Assembly (NCBI RefSeq): GCF_041956535.1
Contig: NW_027192201.1
Coordinates: 548,206-612,205 of the forward strand
Reading direction: 5' to 3'
DNA: 64,000 bases
DNA from: Calcarisporiella thermophila CBS 279.70
Taxonomy: Eukaryota > Fungi > Calcarisporiellomycota
Part shown: in pieces, positions 1,474-63,039 of the stretch
Position numbering within the stretch: position 1 is the stretch's first letter
Layout: each line of letters begins with the position of its first letter
The notes under the pieces: generated by a model
The model's input: only the letters and a program-made list of their open reading frames with translations
Told to the model about the DNA's origin: nothing
The model's database searches: none
Position numbers and translations under genes: made by a program

Positions 1474-4305
1474 CTAATGCTCGCTAGATTTTCGTTCCTG
1501 GGTTTCATCATCGTGCGCACGGTTGTAGTCCTCCTCTTCCTCCTCGCTGTCCCCAACATCAAAGTGTCTATCAGCCGCAAAGAGCGCGGGCGACTCTGCC
1601 ACCAGCTCATCCAGCTCATTGTCATCTTCGCTTCTTAGCGCCGCGAAACGGGCTTTCGCATTTTCTCGGTTGCGGCGATACCATAGAAATCCCGCTAAGC
1701 CAACAAGGCCGCCCACCACTAATAGCGCAACGACGCCAGTCGCCGCATAGTAGTGATTCCATTTACCAGAGCCAAGGCCCGTGGGGTCCTCCCAGCCAAA
1801 AGGAGCCTACACATTGAAAATTAAAAGGGCATAAGCAATCCCAATTCAACAACGCTTCCAAGTAGAACGCACCCCAGAGGTGCCCACCCAGGAAGGCACT
1901 TCTGCAATACTCTTGTCACCCAAACCCATGAACCGATTCACCATGTCAAGCTCAGGTAAAGGTTGATCGTAACCCACGGCATGGGACGCCTGACTCACGA
2001 GAACATATGTAATATTGCGAGCAGATTGATAGGTTCCTACTTGGGTGCCGTTCACAAACCAGGGAAGGACTGGAGCATCGCCCATGCCTACCTCGCCGCC
2101 CCACGTAAGATTAGCGAGAAGAAGTTCGTGGCCGAGATGGTTATAGGCGAGATCATTATCGCCGCTAGATAGAGGGAAGGAGAGATGGGGGGAGGGGGGA
2201 GAGGAAGGTTTAAATGTGATCCTATGGTTAGAGTGAATATCGATATTAAAATACCTGTAAAGTAACAAAGGTATTTTTTCTAGTAATTCCGGTAGAATCT
2301 GTCACAAGAGAGGATTAATAAATGCACGATTAAATTCCATGCATGATATTCTTATCACCCACTTTGACCGGCGGTTCGCTAGTATCCGTATTAAGTGCAG
2401 ATGCAATACGCCCATTGCACTCCGTCCACCCGGTCAGTTTAATGTTTGCGTGGAGCGATTTTACAACTTTGGGATTCTATGAAATGAACAGAATAAAGCA
2501 CTTCATCCCTTCAACCTCACAGAGTTGGCATGGATAATTACCCGTAGATACATAGAAAGGTTCGCTTGCTCATATGGCCAGGTAATACCACACTTCGGGT
2601 AGACATCATGTAGTCGGATGTCGTGCTGATTGACACAGTGCATAGCGCCATCTTGCCTATCAATTTTAAAAATAGATAAAGTATTGAATCTGCCACATGC
2701 TCCCAAAAAGTTATCACTAACGAGAACAAGGTATGGTCAAGCACATTTTGAAGGATCTTATCGCAAGTTGCAGACCGAATCCGAATCCCCGTCGTCCGTT
2801 GCTCCTGGTGGCATTTGGCGAGGAGATCTTCCGAGTCTTTCTGTAATAGGAGACACGTTAGAACAAGCCAATGCACTACATGCTCTCCAGAAGACAACTA
2901 CCTTTTGGGAATCGTCCTTCAGCAAATTTTTTTCTACACTAAACTGATGGTGTGCATGGTACTATTAACAGAAGAATGAGTAACAAGGGAAACACCTCGC
3001 GTGTTATTGCTCACAGAAACCTACTTGGTGCCATGGATCCAACCAGGGATTGCCCATGATTAGACCTTTTACATTATACTATTTCCAAAGAAAAACGAGG
3101 TTGTGAATTCGATCAGATCATTTTACATGTAAATCTGAAGAGTGGGATACCTTGGAAGTGGCATTGCTTCTTTTCAGCATCTCCTGTGCAAAATAGGGTA
3201 CAAACACGCCGCCATATCCTTTCCCCGCTAAATAGATCTATATTTGATAGAGGCGGTGTAAAAAATTTGTTATTCCATGCAGTGAGTATATACTCGGAGC
3301 GGCAAGACTTACATCCGCCTCTTTGAATTGATTGAAGGTATCAAGAAATTTGTCGATAAACGTCAGGAAATGGGCTGACACCTATGGGGCATGAAAATAT
3401 CAAAATAAGAATGGCAGAGACGCATCCACTTCACAGAAAATAATAGAACAAACCTCTGGAATACTTTGGTCATAACTATCTGTGCTAACGAGACTAAATC
3501 CTGTTCCGAGAGGTTGGTCCACTATAATTGTCAATGAGAATGAGGCAATGGTTACGGAAAGTACATCGTCTCTTCACCCATATACCATATAGCACGTTTG
3601 CATAAGTATTCCAACTACCCTTGTTCAACTGCGACGATGTCGTGTCATTGGGGCGGAATGGTCCATTATCTAGGTATATATCACCAATACTGCGGAGCCG
3701 CATTAGCAACATCGACTTCATCATTGTATACTACTAAAAGAATTTACCTCGAACTATGCAACATTTTCAAAATTGACAAAATAAGAATAAAGATAGAGTT
3801 AAAAAAACTCTTACACTCCGGAGATGGAGTATCTAACTATCTCACCATCCAGGGCCACCATTGAGCCAAACAATCTATAGGAATAACGCTGAATGTATTA
3901 GTGGACCTAAATAATAGTGCATCTGGACATATATACCAGTTTTTCATTGCCCTTTGACTCGCGCTTTTGAAATAGCCAGAAAAAGATTTGGGCATTTTTC
4001 GATTCATCGACGATGATATGTCTTGATGCAGAAGCAGAGGATAGGGGTTAACAAATAGTATAAAACTGGCTGGAAGAGAGAAAGCAATACCCTGCGTAGG
4101 ATGGAACTGTATCTTTCGGATCAGGTAGATCCCCGACCGCATAAACATCTACGATGTAGGTGTTGGAGTTGGTTAGATTGGTAGGAATTGGATAATATTG
4201 TAATAGGTGAAGATAATAGATTTCAGTAATAACTCCAACGGATGAATCGAGATGAGAACACAAAATGGAATAGGGTCTTCGGTTACCTTTCGTGGGATTG
4301 CTCAT
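1474..4305 (-). CDS. Kex1-like peptidase S10 membrane protein, multi-exon, catalytic Ser absent; start codon uncertain
   Basis: Spliced motifs SYAGH, IFFWLF, VWLNGGPGCSS, DQPLGTGFS, GNPWLDP, YSGDNDLAYNHLG, ASHAVGYDQP; C-terminal TM (LLVVGGLVGLAGFLWY) and acidic tail; GKGYGG in place of GESYAG. Confidence 0.88.
3748..3753 (-). other. 6-nt microexon (TTCGAG) of the Kex1-like gene
   Basis: Minus strand tgcatag|TTCGAG|gtaaat; needed to join GGA TG| to |T ATT GGT as GGPGCSSIG. Confidence 0.8.
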
Positions 4306-26398: not shown

Positions 26399-28350
26399 AT
26401 GGAGTTAAATAATATAAATTCGAGATTAACAAGTTGGCTGGTAGGGCAATGGCTAGCGAGTGCGTCCTTTGGCCGATACGTGCGAGGCGTATTATTACTC
26501 TTGTGTGTGATTTTTCTTTGGGTATCGTCATCCTTCATAATGAATGACATATTTCAAGACCAAAGCTTCAATAAACCGTTTTTTGTCACGTATATAAATA
26601 CCAGCGTAATTACCAAATCATCCTTCTTATAGAATGATATCAAATTAATGCTTTGTTTTCTAATAGTCGTTTTCATTTTACTTCATCTTGTTCGCATTGG
26701 GCGACACGTTGAATTGTCAACGAAGAAGAAAAGCATATGAGGTGCTTGATGATGAAGAGAATCAGTAACTATTTTTTATCGAAGCTATGTCTTGAACATT
26801 ATCTGATATTGAATTCAATAGTAGGCCTCAAACTCTTAGAGACAGCGTAGATTCACGGGTAAGTTTTTTTTTTCAATAATAAAATATATGTTTTCGGTGT
26901 CCTATTTGTATCCTTTTCATTCCCTAATTCGTGGTTCCTTTTACTCTCCAGGCCTCCAACGAAAGTTTAGTAGGGGCAGTAGTGAAAGCTGTTGTTGATG
27001 TTACCAAAGCCAAAATCAGGCACCGTCTGCAAAGACACAGAGAACACAGTCAAAATGTGTCTGATACCCCAACCCATGTAGATACTGATTTGGCTTCTAT
27101 GGAGAAGTTGACATTGCGGGAGGTGAGTATTTTAGAATTTCGAAAGTCCCTTTATTAGCTGCTAGCTCTAATACTTATTCTGTTTCAGCACTCATGTTTG
27201 GGAGCAATGTTTTGCTCACTATGGTTTCTCGCTAACTGGGCTTCCAACGCAAGCCTTGCATACACCACGGTGGCTAGCTCCACTATCTTATCATCGATGT
27301 CTGGTACTGAAATGTCCATGAAATGAAGTATTTTTATCTTTTACTTATCAGCTGACCTCCATTATGCTCTAATAGGTTTTTTTACCCTACTGATTGGAGC
27401 TGTGGTAGGAGTTGAAAGATTCAGTTTAACTAAGCTTCTAGCTGTACTAGTCAGCATCCTTGGAGTTATATTGGTTTCGACTTCAGACAATTCCCACGCA
27501 TCTGATAGTACACAGAAAAATAATGCACCCTTTGCATTATTTGGAGATTTTTTGGCTCTTACAGGGGCATTTTTGTATGGAGCGTATATTATCTTACTTA
27601 AAACTCGTAAGTAGGAGTGAATATCTTGTCGCACGCTCCAAAGCTAATTTATAAAGTTGGGTGTTCTATAGGGATTAGAGATGAAAGTCGTATTGATATG
27701 CCGCTTTTTTTCGGATTCGTCGGAATCTTCAACATCTTGATGCTTTGGCCGATGTTTATTGTTCTCCATTATGTTGGCCTTGAAAAGTTTGGGTTACCAC
27801 CCTCAAGCACCGTGTGGATGATGGTCTTGATTAATGCCTTTTTTGGAACCTTTTTGTAACTATTGTATTGCTGTGAAAACATATTCTCTGACATTTTACG
27901 CTAACTATTTTACTACGTAGATCCGACTATCTATGGTTGCTCTCTATGCTCAAAACTTCACCTTTGGTAGTCACGCTAGGTCTTTCCCTAACGATTCCCC
28001 TCGCACTTATTGGCGATACCATCTATAAGCATATCTCCCTTGGGATTGCATACTATTTTGGTGCAATCCTTGTTCTCGTTGCTTTCATTACGGTGAATCT
28101 GGCCGCTCTTACCGAATCCTTGAACTGGGCGGCAGACCCGACAAATGCTGCATCTACAGTGGCTGCATCACTACTAGACGCTGCCGAAGAAACTATTTTA
28201 AAAGAGCATCAGAGGGAAACTCAATTAACTCGCGGAGAGTCTAGTCACCGCCCTGTACTCCATTCTCCTCCTTCATCCAGCTCAAGCAGATCCTCAATAA
28301 GCGCCAACGATCTGCTAAAATATGTGGTCAACAGTGTTGATCAGGCATAA
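26399..28350 (+). CDS. EamA/SLC35F5 (Thi74-like) transporter, multi-exon
   Basis: VIFLWVSSSFIMN, FNKPFFVTYINTS, WFLANWASNASLAYTTVASSTILSSMSG, GDFLALTGAFLYG.Y, TSPLVVTLGLSLTIPLALIGD. Confidence 0.9.
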
Positions 28351-56766: not shown

Positions 56767-56975
56767 ACGTATTATTTCTTTTTACATTTGTATAGAATTG
56801 TATTTAACTGTATTTCATTTATGTAAGCTAGCAATGTTGCTCTTTTTCTCGCATATTGTATTGTGCAATATCGATCAGATTTACTGTCTGAAAGCTTCAT
56901 TACATTAAGATAAATATATAGCAGTCACGATATATAATTTCAAGTCCACGCGTTTGTTAACAGATTTCGAAATTA

Positions 56976-59900
56976 ATGATGAACGCAATAGAAGAATTTC
57001 GAGCATTACTCGTTGATTGTCTCGAAAATAGGCTGGCTACGGTAATAGATCCTTAAAAATTAATCGAAACGGTTTTTAGTATTAACTTATTTTTTGGTTA
57101 GGATCCTAATACAATTAGACATGATATTGAAGTTTATTACGGGTATGAAAATTTTGCATCATTTCAAATTATAAATCCTTTTATTATATTCATTTGTATA
57201 TTTCTGTACTCTCTAGCCTTTTTGAACTAGATGGACCGCCACCAAAAAAATGGAAACAAAGCCCTAAGGATATCATTAGTGAGAATTCCCTGCAGCGAGA
57301 GCAAGAGCTTGTAAATCTCTTGTTCTCTGAATTTACAAGGGCATTCCAGGCCACTGGTAATATGGTAAATTACAAGGTGCTTATTTTTCGGCAATTCTAT
57401 ACCATTTAAACATTTTTGCTCTCTTTATCTGAAATAGATGGAGCTTCTCAATGTCCTCATACAAACTGTTATTGTATCTTCTCCAACCAATTCAAAAATG
57501 AAATTAATCATCGCAATCTTGGACTCTCTGATCAACGATACGACTAAAACTGACGCTTTGCTCACTTGCGCGACTCCTCGTCTTGAATCCATTATACCTG
57601 CTCATATTTCCATTTCGCAGATAATGGAGCTATTAATACCATTCCTAGATATTTCTTCGTCTTCGTTTTGGGATGAAATTCTCCGCTGGTTACTTCGCTG
57701 CATCAAATCTAGTCCAACCCTTCTCCAGTCGATCCCAAGCACTTTAGGGATTAATCTAATCAAACAACTAATTCGACAGATAAACTTGCTACCTGCCAAA
57801 CTAGACCGGTGCAAACTTGAATCGATTAGTTTAGCTCAAGATTTAGTGACAACCTTGTTAAACGGCGTAGATGATTCTGATGGATGCATTTCTTACTATG
57901 AAGCCATCTTAGCTGTATGTATTGAATCTCTTTCATATTATTTTGATATTCGGAAAACTATATACATACTAAAACTTTTTTGAAGTATCCAGAAATGTTT
58001 GGAAGTATCACACGTGGCTCCTTTACTCAAAATATCCATTGGACTTTGGAAACTTTTGCAAATGATTTGAGCAAACGACGTCGGCACCTTGCTTTTCTTA
58101 TGATGCCACCTGGTAAGAAGTTTTAATATGATTAGAATATTCTATTAATACTTTAATTTTATCCCGTATTTTCAGATGCATCATGGCCTCTTATATCGCA
58201 AATTAGTCGCCGTCATGAGTATAGCGATTTAACTACACGTATAAGTTTTCGAATGTTTGATAGTGACTTGGTAAGATATAGCTACTTTGACAGAATTGTT
58301 ACCTATGTTATATGCATTCTATTCTATAGATTGAGTTTGTGCAAGAAGGAAATTCTACTGATTTTAATTCTCATTTCCGAGATATGCTTTTCCAACGTGC
58401 CCCAATGGATGAATACCGTACACTTATTAAATCCACAGGCGGTAACAGTCCAGACACAAACCTGGTGCGCAAAGCAATAGTTGAAAAGATAAAAGACGTT
58501 GTCAGATATATTCAAAGCATATCGAAATTCGATGAAATACGTTCAGGTATATAACTTAATCATCATTACAATATTTTTTCCATTTATTCCCTTAATATTT
58601 ATTAATTTCTTTAGATTTGATTCATCGGGAACAAGAAGTTGCCAGTGGGGAAGATCTCGAAATGGTGATCCCAGAAAACACGGATTTCTGGGAATTGATA
58701 ATCGAGACAGCTGACCAACTTTATAGTTTCGTTGCAAATGAGTAATTCACCCGCATTTTTCTTTTTTTATCCAAATTCCTAATATATTTTCTTGATAGCC
58801 TCATTTCTTATGAAGAGTTACTAAGAGATTTTTATCGCATGGTGCACCCAGAAAACGAAGATACAATTAATTCAAAGCATTGTCTTCAAAAGGATAATAC
58901 ATTAATATGGCTTCTACTACAGCTTTTTCGTATCCTTTACTCAGATTTAAATGAACTCGTCTTTATATGTTTATCAATAGTCTTTTTCTTTAACTCAACT
59001 CGTCTTTTCAGATATCGAGAAAATTGGGGCCAATGTTATAGCTAGAGATTTTGCTTCCGACGAACGGCTCTTTAATATGCTGGTCAAGCTACATAATGAC
59101 AAACAAGTTATTTCAAGGGATGCTTTTTATCTTAGAGATCTAGCGCTACCATGTGCAGTAAGCTATGCAAAAAATATTGTTAAGATTTCAAGTATATTTA
59201 ACTTTGTTTTGATTTTAGGTCAGTCACCAGCAAGCTCACATACGAGACAGAACTAATATCAAATACCGTCACCCACAACTTGCTCTCGCTCTTCCATATG
59301 CACCTATATGTTATCATTTGCAACAATATTTTGCGAATCATTACAAAGGTTTTTTTTTTTTCTCCTATTACCACAATTTTTTACTTATGCATTTTTGTCT
59401 CTTAGCCAACGCTACCAATCCGGATATTTTCCGTGATATATCGTTCCAGGAGGTTATAAAAATTGCGATGGAAAGTCAATTGCGTCAAAATGTAGTTCCA
59501 AATACTCTCTACGTACACTTAGTTCCAAACAAGCTGGAAGTAAGTGTCCTGGCGTTTCCTGGTGCCACTTATTTAAAAGGCGGTGTTCTCGGATATCAAT
59601 TACTTGACTTTTTGACCATTAACGCGAAACACCGGTAATTAAAGCCTGATCAGGTTCTAACTCTTATTTCTACTCATTATGTTGCCTTCTTTCAATATTT
59701 GCATAGGCTGATGCAACTTATCTACAAGATGATGTTTGATTCCGAGTCAGGTCCAAGAGTACAACTGGAGGGCTCAAGCCAAATAAACTGCGTTTCACCT
59801 TACGTACTCGATGTTGTTTATAAGCTATTACATAGTGCACCTTGTTCGTATGTATCAATATTTTTGGAGCTTAGCTTTGTTGACTTTAATTGTTTATTAT

Positions 59901-62900
59901 TATTAGTGTTGAGTTAATGGTGAAGGAAATATTTGATAAATTACGCCGGTGTGATAGAGCAATTAAAGCTCGTGCTGATGGTGGCCAGCAGAGATTAACG
60001 GATATTACTTTGCGATGGCAACATACTGTGTTGCAACTGTTGAATTTCAGATTACTCCGATTTTTAAAATATCCTTTTTTTTTATTTTATTGATGCTTTC
60101 ATTCTTTTTAATGCTAACATATTTTCCTTAACATACACATACATGGTCTTCGATGTCCTTTAGTCTCCTGCATTATATTAAGTATTCGCTGTCGTATCTA
60201 GATAACCGGCATATGTATCAGGTGGTGGAATCATTCGCCATTAATATAATGGTAACCTAATCATATTATTGTATCTAGAACCCCTCTGACCTTGTTATGC
60301 TATCCAACAGAAAATGCAAATTGATATTAAGATACTTCGCTCTTTAAATGACCCCGGTCGAGATAAGCCTGTATGGTTTAACGAGTCCGAGTTATTGACA
60401 AGAGTTATGGTTATATGTATAGCAAAACTTCTTAAAATCAGGTAAGGGTATACTATCATCTGAATTTATTTGCAGACTCACTAATTCTATCTTTATAGAG
60501 GACAATCGGATCTTTCCACTGAGCTCGTGCACGGGGCCCTGCAGAGCCTCCATTCTCATAAAATAGAATGGTCAGCAGAAACTATGAATTGGTTCCCAGA
60601 AACTGTACGGTCTTATTTCGAAGGACCTGGAGCGCTACTTCCTGCTAGACAGCAAATCGTAGAGAATCAAGTATGTTCCTGATGCTGTAGTATTATAACT
60701 TAGTAGGTTGAAGTTGCTTATGTTGAAATCTAGATTCGTCAAATGATACAACGAAGCAAGATGCATAATATTCTAATGATGCCCAATCCCAATGCTCCTG
60801 CTGATGCTGAAAAAAACCTCAGAGACTACTATACTAAGGAAGAGAATCAGCGGTTCTTTTTGTGCACCTTTTGGACAATAATCTTCCTTAAGAAGCAAAT
60901 AGAACCATTCATGGTAGAACGTATCCTTTTTCTGTTTTCTCTCATACTTTCATCTTTTATTATTATTATGTTATTCTTAACACCTTAAATTAGATGCACG
61001 AAAGGTTATGCTCACTTTCCCACCCGCATGTATGTCAACGTATGTCATGGAGTTAATGGACTTTATTTTGGACAAGGATTATGGTGGAATTGATCCAACT
61101 GTGGTAAGTGTTGTTTTCAAAACAATGTTGTGGAGGATTATATAACTTGGTTTTCATATAGCCGCAAAAATTACTTGATGATTTGATTTGGAAGTATCAG
61201 CTTCTCTCATTTGAGCACGTTATTTTCTCTCTCACACATGCGAAGAGGAAAGGAGACATTGCGCTTAAATTCCTTGAATACCTTTTGTTCACCTCGCCAT
61301 CATTCATGGGCCGTGTTGCAAAATGGATGTCTCTTGGATTTAATAGTCGATATTGGACAGAGGTTGATTTTCACGAAAAACTAATGGAATACCTCAAAGA
61401 ATATCCCGAGTATTTCGAGTACGAAGCTTTCGCCATGAATGGTTATGACCACACCACTCGTAAACTTGACCCTCCGCCTTCTGCTGCGATGCCAGTCTAT
61501 TATAACAATATCGTACTACGCTCTACTGCCATATTCGATATTGTGATTGCCCGTCTTATAGAAAATGAACGAAAAGATTTATTGTTACAGCTACTTGAAA
61601 AATACGGGTGCATTTATCAATACCACGCAACTCCTCTCGCCTTCGTACAAGACCTCCTAAATTACTACTACGATTCTTCTATGCTACAAGACCATCAGGT
61701 GATGAAACGTATACTCTTTTTGCTGGGTGAGTAATATGTAGGCATATCTTAGGCCATTGTTACTTATCTATTGTTTTATAGATTTCTCGCAATATGAAAT
61801 CATACCAGACTTGGTTCAATTTGTGGAAGGTGCCGAATTCTCAGATTTTTCACCTGGACTAGGATTTGACCTTTCATATTTCGAGAAAGTCATCGTGAAA
61901 CTTGCCGATAGTAATCGATTGTTTAACTTTTTTTATATTTAAAATTTTAATTGCTATATTTTATATTATAGGTTTGAACCATAGTAAATGTGCTCCAAAA
62001 TCATCACCAAACCTGCCAGAGCGACATTTTCGTGAAATTGCAAATCCTGCTGTCCAAGCGCTTTCTATCGCATGCATAGAAATTATGGCGGCGCCCGTGA
62101 GCTCTATTGAAATTGTGGGATATCTACTCGATATCACATTAGCGCGCAGTAAACACAGTACTGGTATCCCTGCTTCCGTTCTTCATGCTGTTGGTCTATT
62201 ACTCTCGTGCTTGCCGGTAGAAAATTTTGTGAAGCCTGTTTGGGCAGAGTTTGCGTTTATGATTTCGTCTGATCCATACCTCTTGGGGTGGTCTGAACCG
62301 TGTCCAATGGTATTTTATAATTCTTATTATAAGAATAACAGTGCACTAAGTGGCTAATATATTGCAGGCACCATCGGGCGGTGATATTTTTGATAATGAG
62401 GCTTTACTTATGTCTGGCGTGGCATTACGCCAAGAGACGGCCACGGCAGTTTTCCCCTACGTATTCAATGACTATACTTTTAATTTACATAACTTCACGA
62501 CAAACACCCCAAACAGCTTTCTCACGCTATATCACAGCCTCTTGCATTACTCGAGTTTAGACCAGTTTTCACTCTTTTTACCATTCTTGCGTTCTATACG
62601 CGAGCAAGCCACAACGGATATACAACTGCTATATGTATGCGCTATAATTGGGCCTGCTTTACATAGAATTGAAAAGCTTCCTGCAATTGCTACTGAGGTT
62701 AAATTTTTTTAAAATATCCCACTACACTATCAGCCACTTACTCTTATTTTAATAGTATGCATTAGAGTTAATGTTAATGGTGAGCAAAGTTACCTGCAAG
62801 CTGGATATAACTATGGTCGGAACTACGAACGCGTTGGAGCGAGTGTATCTCTTTTTGTAAGTTCGATATATATTTTCAATTGAATACTAATTTCTCAATG

Positions 62901-63039
62901 CATTCATATGCCACGTAGGTTCCATGTTAAGCATCTCTTTACTCGCGATACTCAAACAATTACAAGTGTCCAAGAAATTATTCAGACAATGCACCCAACT
63001 GTGAAGGAACGTTTATACAAACTGACGTTGACTGTTTAA
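56976..63039 (+). CDS. MED23: Mediator tail subunit 23, about 25 exons
   Basis: LIWLLLQ, LLDFLTINAKHRL, VSPYVLD, ESELLTR, W.AET..WFP, FLCTFW, LIWKYQ, YWTEVDFHEKLMEYL..YPE.F, MPVYYNN, YQYHATPL..L.YYY, RHFREIANPAVQAL..ACIEIM. Confidence 0.9.
58930..59011 (+). other. U12-type GT-AG intron in MED23 (phase 1)
   Basis: 5' GTATCCTTT; branch TTCTTTAAC 58986-58994; splicing gives LLQLF-H-IEKIG and an open downstream frame. Confidence 0.85.
60069..60142 (+). other. U12-type AT-AC intron in MED23 (phase 2)
   Basis: 5' ATATCCTTTT; branch TTTTCCTTAAC 60122-60132; 3' AC at 60141-60142 restores RFLK-WSSMSF. Confidence 0.9.
60921..60993 (+). other. U12-type GT-AG intron in MED23 (phase 1)
   Basis: 5' GTATCCTTTT; branch TTCTTAAC 60974-60981; TAG at 60991-60993; gives MVE-H-ARKVML. 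Confidence 0.87.

Follow-up and report, generated by a model that had tools for sequence, protein, structure and literature searches.

Minor-spliceosomal (U12-type) introns and the minor small nuclear RNAs (snRNAs) have already been described in zygomycete fungi (PMC2396436, PMC2846911, PMC10639083), and a pan-eukaryote survey presents Dikarya as lacking minor introns (PMC10639083). In animals, Med23 of the mouse has been validated as a minor-intron gene, with a minor intron in phase 1 (PMC12956336). Here we describe three introns, very probably genuine U12-type introns and one of them with AT-AC ends, in the gene for Mediator subunit 23 (MED23) of the fungus Calcarisporiella thermophila CBS 279.70. 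The gene lies in a stretch of 64,000 nucleotides (nt) of contig NW_027192201.1 (positions 548,206 to 612,205), hereafter called the window; positions are those of the window unless another sequence is named. The main text of the pan-eukaryote survey and one of its supplements make no mention of C. thermophila (PMC10639083). What is new here is the presence of minor introns in C. thermophila MED23, while the kind of intron and the status of Med23 as a minor-intron gene were already known.

The three introns closely resemble those of other early-diverging fungi (Rhizopus, Phycomyces, Rhizophagus, and Basidiobolus; PMC2396436, PMC2846911, PMC10639083) in the RTATCCTT donor, the TCCTTAAC branch site, the mixture of AT-AC and GT-AG ends, the accompanying set of four minor snRNAs, and the avoidance of phase 0. 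By contrast, C. thermophila packs three minor introns into one gene, in a genome that perhaps holds only dozens of them. U12-type introns are also found in animal MED23, both in mouse (PMC12956336) and in the starfish Asterias, but the starfish U12-type positions are not those of C. thermophila, and both of them are occupied by major (U2-type) introns in the fungus.

Signals and reading frame of the three introns

In introns 1, 2, and 3 alike, an RTATCCTTT donor stands directly at the exon-intron boundary and is followed by a TYYTTAAC branch site (Table 1). The branch sites are close to TCCTTAAC and fall inside the expected range of about 8-21 nt from the 3' splice site, and the two branch positions that deviate from TCCTTAAC retain a G-U wobble with the U12 box. 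Six-frame inspection and explicit phase tracking place the split codons CAT, AAA, and CAT across the three introns, and the MED23 frame is kept only if all three are removed. Boundaries, donors, branch sites, and phases read exactly as an earlier note on this DNA had claimed. Within MED23, the donor is exclusive to these introns, as none of the remaining 21 (55-74 nt; donors GTAAGT, GTATGT, GTAATT, GTTTTT, GTTAAA, etc.) begins with RTATCCTTT.

At the second junction, a full enumeration yielded no frame-preserving GT-AG or GC-AG pair, only AT-AC pairs, among which 60069-60142 is singled out by signals matching the consensus, a usable distance to the branch site, and homology without gaps to Radiomyces and Basidiobolus. 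Alignments to three orthologues cross every junction with no residue missing. Within the window, RTATCCTTT occurs six times against an expectation of 2.08, and three of these copies lie within 2,064 nt on one strand (Poisson P ~6e-6). Nine RTATCCTT sites are present in the window, and a branch motif lies 45-50 nt downstream of only three, namely introns 1-3. The RTATCCTTT copies at 3214, 26908, and 46037 were rejected as U12-type introns since they are without a proper branch site and 3' end. At the second of these sites, a 44-nt segment (26908-26951, GTATCCTTTT...TTCCTTTTACTCTCCAG) combines a U12-like donor with a degenerate branch-like motif in AT-rich, non-coding-looking sequence, and is probably a chance occurrence.

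The gene itself is MED23, identified by significant matches to the Pfam Med23 profile (PF11573) in the exons at 61162-61726 (E 1.2e-27) and 61972-62309 (E 8e-11) and by its collinearity in tblastn with the MED23 proteins of Ambispora, Diversispora, and Basidiobolus. An exhaustive HMMER search with a 190-residue exon as the query returned 124 homologues, and those that were looked up are named or Pfam-annotated as Med23. The top-ranking homologue is the C. thermophila protein XP_069251499.1, whose full identity to the exons assigns the window to this species. The exon chain was assembled by enumerating all GT-AG, GC-AG, and AT-AC pairs that preserve the frame from one homologous open segment to the next and checking that each exon is open in its phase. 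The exons were searched and aligned individually, as separate fragments, and the three N-terminal ones were placed via homology and phase. An in-frame stop at 56958 lies 5' of the start codon. All 25 exons are open, giving ~1509 codons without a stop or frameshift, and all 24 introns are properly ended.

Table 1. Coordinates of the MED23 gene, its introns, related introns in other species, and minor snRNA candidates
Feature	Sequence	Positions	Strand	Details
MED23 gene	Window	56976..63039	+	25 exons, 24 introns, ~1509 codons
Start codon	Window	56976		ATG
Stop codon	Window	63037-63039		TAA
Intron 1	Window	58930..59011	+	U12-type GT-AG, 82 nt, phase 1, donor GTATCCTTT, starts GTATCCTTTA
Branch motif, intron 1	Window	58986-58994		TTCTTTAAC; branch A to last intron base 18 nt
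Intron 2	Window	60069..60142	+	U12-type AT-AC, 74 nt, phase 2, donor ATATCCTTT, starts ATATCCTTTT
Branch motif, intron 2	Window	60124-60132		TTCCTTAAC; branch A to last intron base 11 nt
Intron 3	Window	60921..60993	+	U12-type GT-AG, 73 nt, phase 1, donor GTATCCTTT, starts GTATCCTTTT
Branch motif, intron 3	Window	60973-60981		ATTCTTAAC; branch A to last intron base 13 nt
Intron at first starfish U12 position	Window	61911-61971	+	U2-type, donor GTAATC
Intron at second starfish U12 position	Window	62857-62918	+	U2-type, donor GTAAGT
Public model XP_069251499.1/KAL1920232.1	Window	60153-62357	+	592 residues, 'uncharacterized protein VTP21DRAFT_1378', Calcarisporiella thermophila
Asterias rubens MED23 intron	L021	15913-16357		U12-type AT-AC, residue 1086, phase 1, ATATCCTTGA...TTCCTTAAC
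Asterias rubens MED23 intron	L021	19555-20641		U12-type GT-AG, residue 1311, phase 2, GTATCCTT
Basidiobolus ranarum MED23 intron at second starfish position	L022	6718-6792		U12-type GT-AG, residue 1434, phase 2, GTATCCTT
U11 candidate	C6	999547-999746		53.1 bits (cut-off 39); 5' end AAAAAGGGC
U12 candidate	C1	926673-926772	-	44.4 bits (cut-off 53); 5' UUGCCUCAAUCUAAUGAGUAAGGAUAAU, Sm site
U4atac candidate	C11	412021-412144		42.9 bits (cut-off 53); Sm site AAUUUUUGG
U6atac candidate	C2	193832-193964		47.6 bits (cut-off 33); single gene

On established knowledge of the U11/U12 di-snRNP (small nuclear ribonucleoprotein) and the boxes seen in the snRNA candidates described below, the 5' end of U11 snRNA (AAAAAGGGC) would pair with the /RTATCCTTT donor, and the U12 snRNA box GUAAGGAU would pair with the TYYTTAAC branch site, leaving the branch adenosine bulged out. 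The U4atac/U6atac.U5 tri-snRNP would displace U11 and catalyze removal, at AT-AC ends in intron 2 and at GT-AG ends in introns 1 and 3. That the introns are actually spliced, and that this has any regulatory consequence, we infer from the sequence. None of the three intron lengths is divisible by 3, and retention of intron 1, 2, or 3 would bring a first stop at 59043, 60091, or 60986, respectively. Since retention of any one of them leads to a premature stop, full-length MED23 would need three minor-splicing events. It is conceivable that minor splicing thereby becomes limiting for MED23 output or regulates it. The pan-eukaryote survey argues for neutrality in much of minor-intron evolution (PMC10639083).

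Intron positions in other MED23 genes

Public MED23 proteins were each mapped to the locus of origin by exact spliced mapping, and their introns were placed on a common alignment with the exon peptides of the window. Such an alignment of positions, by which the earlier note proposed to separate ancestral from gained introns, revealed U12-type counterparts of introns 1 and 2. At the same residue and phase as intron 1, a U12-type intron with the donor GTATCCTT is present in Basidiobolus ranarum (with CTCCTTAAC), Ambispora, and Diversispora, so that 8 nt of the donor are identical across four lineages including C. thermophila. The intron at this position is U2-type (GTAAGG) in Radiomyces and is absent from Umbelopsis, Dissophora, Dimargaris, Massospora, and Asterias. 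Intron 2 is matched, in residue as well as in phase, by an AT-AC intron of Radiomyces (ATATCCTTTT...ATCCTTAAC) and is absent elsewhere. C. thermophila and Radiomyces have in common the AT-AC donor and TCCTTAAC, and the public Radiomyces protein is spliced over the AT-AC ends. Apart from such signals, the introns at conserved positions differ in their lengths and in the 3' sequences inspected.

Intron 3 shows a different distribution. Its position is occupied, in the same phase, by U2-type introns in Basidiobolus (GTATGT), Radiomyces (GTAAGT), Ambispora (GTTTGT), and Diversispora (GTAAGT). In the MED23 genes of Massospora, Dimargaris, Umbelopsis, and Dissophora, introns are absent at all three U12 positions, and the alignment places no Asterias intron at any of them. 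Conidiobolus MED23 is intronless in the region, which is interrupted by an assembly gap. Of two metagenome scans for MED23, one gave no match and the other gave two loci, both intronless at all three junctions. An annotated Diversispora intron near the position of intron 2 was rejected as spurious. This 162-nt 'intron' of Diversispora eburnea (L017:5115-5276, GTCATC...AAAG) is in-frame coding sequence for a Gly-rich stretch and conserved residues, and the public MED23 protein of this species is therefore short by 54 residues.

Two further positions carry U12-type introns in the starfish, the second of them also in Basidiobolus, and U2-type introns in C. thermophila (Table 1). Overall, at five conserved MED23 positions the intron is U12-type in at least one opisthokont lineage and U2-type in others.

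Minor-spliceosome components and candidate introns in the genome

The earlier note also proposed that this fungus has an active minor spliceosome. In line with this, a search of the 28.16-Mb C. thermophila assembly with Rfam models returned one full-length candidate for each of the U11, U12, U4atac, and U6atac families (Table 1). The U12 and U4atac candidates are full length, with functional boxes and Sm sites intact, and the 5' end of U4atac (ACCGUUUUUCUCAAGG) is complementary to U6atac (CUUGAGAAGAACGG). The U4atac candidate and the window share a contig, with the candidate ~136 kb upstream of the window. On the protein side, a homologue of U11/U12-59K (PDCD7) was found (33.9 bits against a Pfam cut-off of 27), and the zf-U11-48K model had no match, as discussed later.

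We then consider how far minor introns extend beyond MED23. A strict pattern, TATCCTT-N-TCCTTAAC, was searched across the genome together with control patterns. It gave 17 matches against 3 in the control for gaps of 25-55 nt and 15 against 5 for gaps of 56-86 nt, that is, 32 matches against 8. Thirty-one of these lie outside MED23 (L034-L064), and 29 of them are purine-initial. Complete candidates, with donor, branch site, and a matching AC or AG 8-24 nt past the branch A, make up 24 of the 31; 16 have AT-AC and 8 have GT-AG termini, although the filter for a perfect branch site may inflate the AT-AC share. A share of 16 in 24 looks unusually high compared with the figures for animals and plants. 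Overall, at least 25 textbook U12-type introns with an AT-AC bias are counted in the genome. A relaxed branch pattern (TYYTTAAC) proved too noisy for counting, with 39 matches against 35 in the control. Because only one of the three MED23 introns satisfies the strict branch pattern, the genome probably contains several dozen minor introns in total, not hundreds. The candidates are thus clear evidence, at the level of sequence patterns, of active minor splicing, but not of an exceptionally rich genome, and the suggestion of the earlier note that the fungus may be rich in minor introns stands only in this reduced form.

The strict matches also point to a branch-site consensus particular to this species. 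The base preceding TCCTTAAC is A in 19 of 29 strict matches (P ~9e-5), and the second base upstream is T in 16 of 29. Against the Rfam consensus GUaAGGAAAAu, the U12 candidate has GUAAGGAUAAU, with AAGGAUA in place of AAGGAAA, i.e., an A-to-U change. The snRNA and its branch sites appear to co-vary, with a species branch consensus of TATCCTTAAC, and such co-variation would support both the snRNA candidate and the introns.

Several observations weigh against a functional minor spliceosome acting on these introns. The U12 and U4atac candidates score under the Rfam gathering threshold, and the zf-U11-48K Pfam model, which is only 25 positions long and weak in a six-frame search, had no match in the genome. 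The box of U6atac that pairs with the 5' splice site reads GUCGA, not the canonical AAGGA, and MED23 contains loose U2-type donors (GTTTTT, GTTAAA, GTAACC), a point taken up below. Two pattern searches, and scans of 15 candidate loci with Rfam models, turned up no second U6atac with the canonical AAGGAGAGA box; the best-looking match (L027) was rejected, having no Rfam match at E <= 1 and appearing protein-coding-like by eye. We regard the unusual box as an oddity rather than an objection, as it resembles a published 'CC variant' of U6atac, [GU]CCGA, which replaces AAGGA in Acanthamoeba, Physarum, cnidarians, oomycetes, and Physcomitrella (Davila Lopez et al., 2008; PMC2396436). Lineages with the CC variant are treated in that paper as carriers of minor spliceosomal RNAs. 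The C. thermophila box is likewise non-AAGGA, with the U4atac and U12 pairing intact and a single gene, but GUCGA is one base off the variant and belongs to a fungus, while AAGGA is found in both zygomycetes of the paper, Rhizopus and Phycomyces (PMC2396436).

Alternative readings, intron history, and the public gene model

It could be argued that the AT-AC intron alone is truly minor, and that the GT-AG introns 1 and 3 are removed by the major spliceosome despite their U12-like signals. The degenerate donors of the U2-type introns in this gene would fit such a reading, as would the good pyrimidine tract and CAG that terminate intron 1 and the U2-type introns at position 3 in four other fungi. 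Nevertheless, both introns have the full 9-nt RTATCCTTT donor, and the branch motif of each, 18 nt from the 3' end in intron 1 and 13 nt in intron 3, pairs with U12, the variant position forming a G-U wobble. U1 is a poor pairing partner for GTATCC, and the retention of the GTATCCTT donor in four lineages at position 1 is sensible only under recognition by U11. We therefore consider major splicing of introns 1 and 3 improbable. Even less probable is the use of other nearby splice sites, with the U12-like motifs being coincidental. Frame-compatible alternatives do exist, at 58969-59011 and 58959-59019 for intron 1, at 60914-61004 for intron 3, and through an AC at 60136 for intron 2. That AC and the branch A are, however, just 5 nt apart, the public model takes 60921-60993, orthologue alignments run without gap or insertion through the proposed junctions, orthologous introns lie at exactly matching residues and phases, and three chance RTATCCTTT copies within 2 kb would be a very rare event, as calculated above.

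The public gene model for this locus is fragmentary, which might suggest a decaying or untranscribed MED23 copy in which the introns are unspliced relics. The model, XP_069251499.1, matches the window with 100% identity over its exons, from its first residue at 60153 to its last at 62354 (tblastn). It starts at the first ATG past the AT-AC intron, 11 nt after the intron end, and is without all of the coding sequence upstream of intron 2, just as would be expected from the statement in the earlier note that GT-AG gene finders mis-annotate an AT-AC junction. On the 3' side, the model leaves the ordinary GT-AG intron 62310-62367 in place and continues into it until a stop, so that the last three exons (62368-63039) are lost. 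Between these ends, the junction of intron 3 (60920/60994) is used exactly (...MVE-H-ARKV...). XP_069251499.1 is thus a truncated fragment of ~40% of the true length (592 of ~1509 residues), and the AT-AC intron and a single read-through, rather than damage to the gene, account for its fragmentary state. With the exons open throughout and every intron properly ended, a decaying copy is the least probable of these alternatives, and we retain the reading of introns 1-3 as U12-type introns of an intact gene.

The comparative map allows minimum ages to be proposed for two of the introns. Intron 1 appears to go back at least to the ancestor that Basidiobolus shares with Mucoromycota. C. thermophila has been placed as sister to the remaining Mucoromycotina (bioRxiv 10.1101/2022.06.24.497490), and since Radiomyces shares the AT-AC intron, intron 2 would date back at least to this subphylum. 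Conversion of minor to major introns between lineages has been described (PMC10639083, PMC2846911), and MED23 offers similar cases: position 1 is U2-type in Radiomyces, and at the starfish U12 positions, several or all of the examined fungi have U2-type introns. Position 3 is the reverse, being U12-type solely in C. thermophila and U2-type in four fungal lineages.

On this alignment, the position of intron 3 is an old one, and the class of intron that it holds varies from lineage to lineage. As the intron is U2-type in Basidiobolus, two Glomeromycotina, and one Mucorales species, a single major-to-minor switch in the Calcarisporiella lineage would be more parsimonious than three parallel minor-to-major conversions. 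To our knowledge, conversion of major to minor introns is generally assumed not to occur; Burge and colleagues are said to have described the minor-to-major direction in 1998. We consider a U2-to-U12 conversion of intron 3 possible but rather unlikely, because minor-to-major conversions clearly occur elsewhere in MED23. If it were true, intron 3 would document a rare departure from the one-way conversion that is assumed and, together with an AT-AC intron seen only in Mucoromycotina, would mean that MED23 both gains and loses minor introns.

These findings do not overturn the current understanding of minor introns. They provide a concrete, checkable case in which an AT-AC intron cuts short a public gene model, and other minor-intron genes in the C. 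thermophila genome deserve re-annotation. With these candidates, C. thermophila joins the fungi with a complete-looking set of minor-spliceosome RNAs, and its MED23 gene is a compact natural experiment in intron evolution, in which one of five positions could be a major-to-minor switch.

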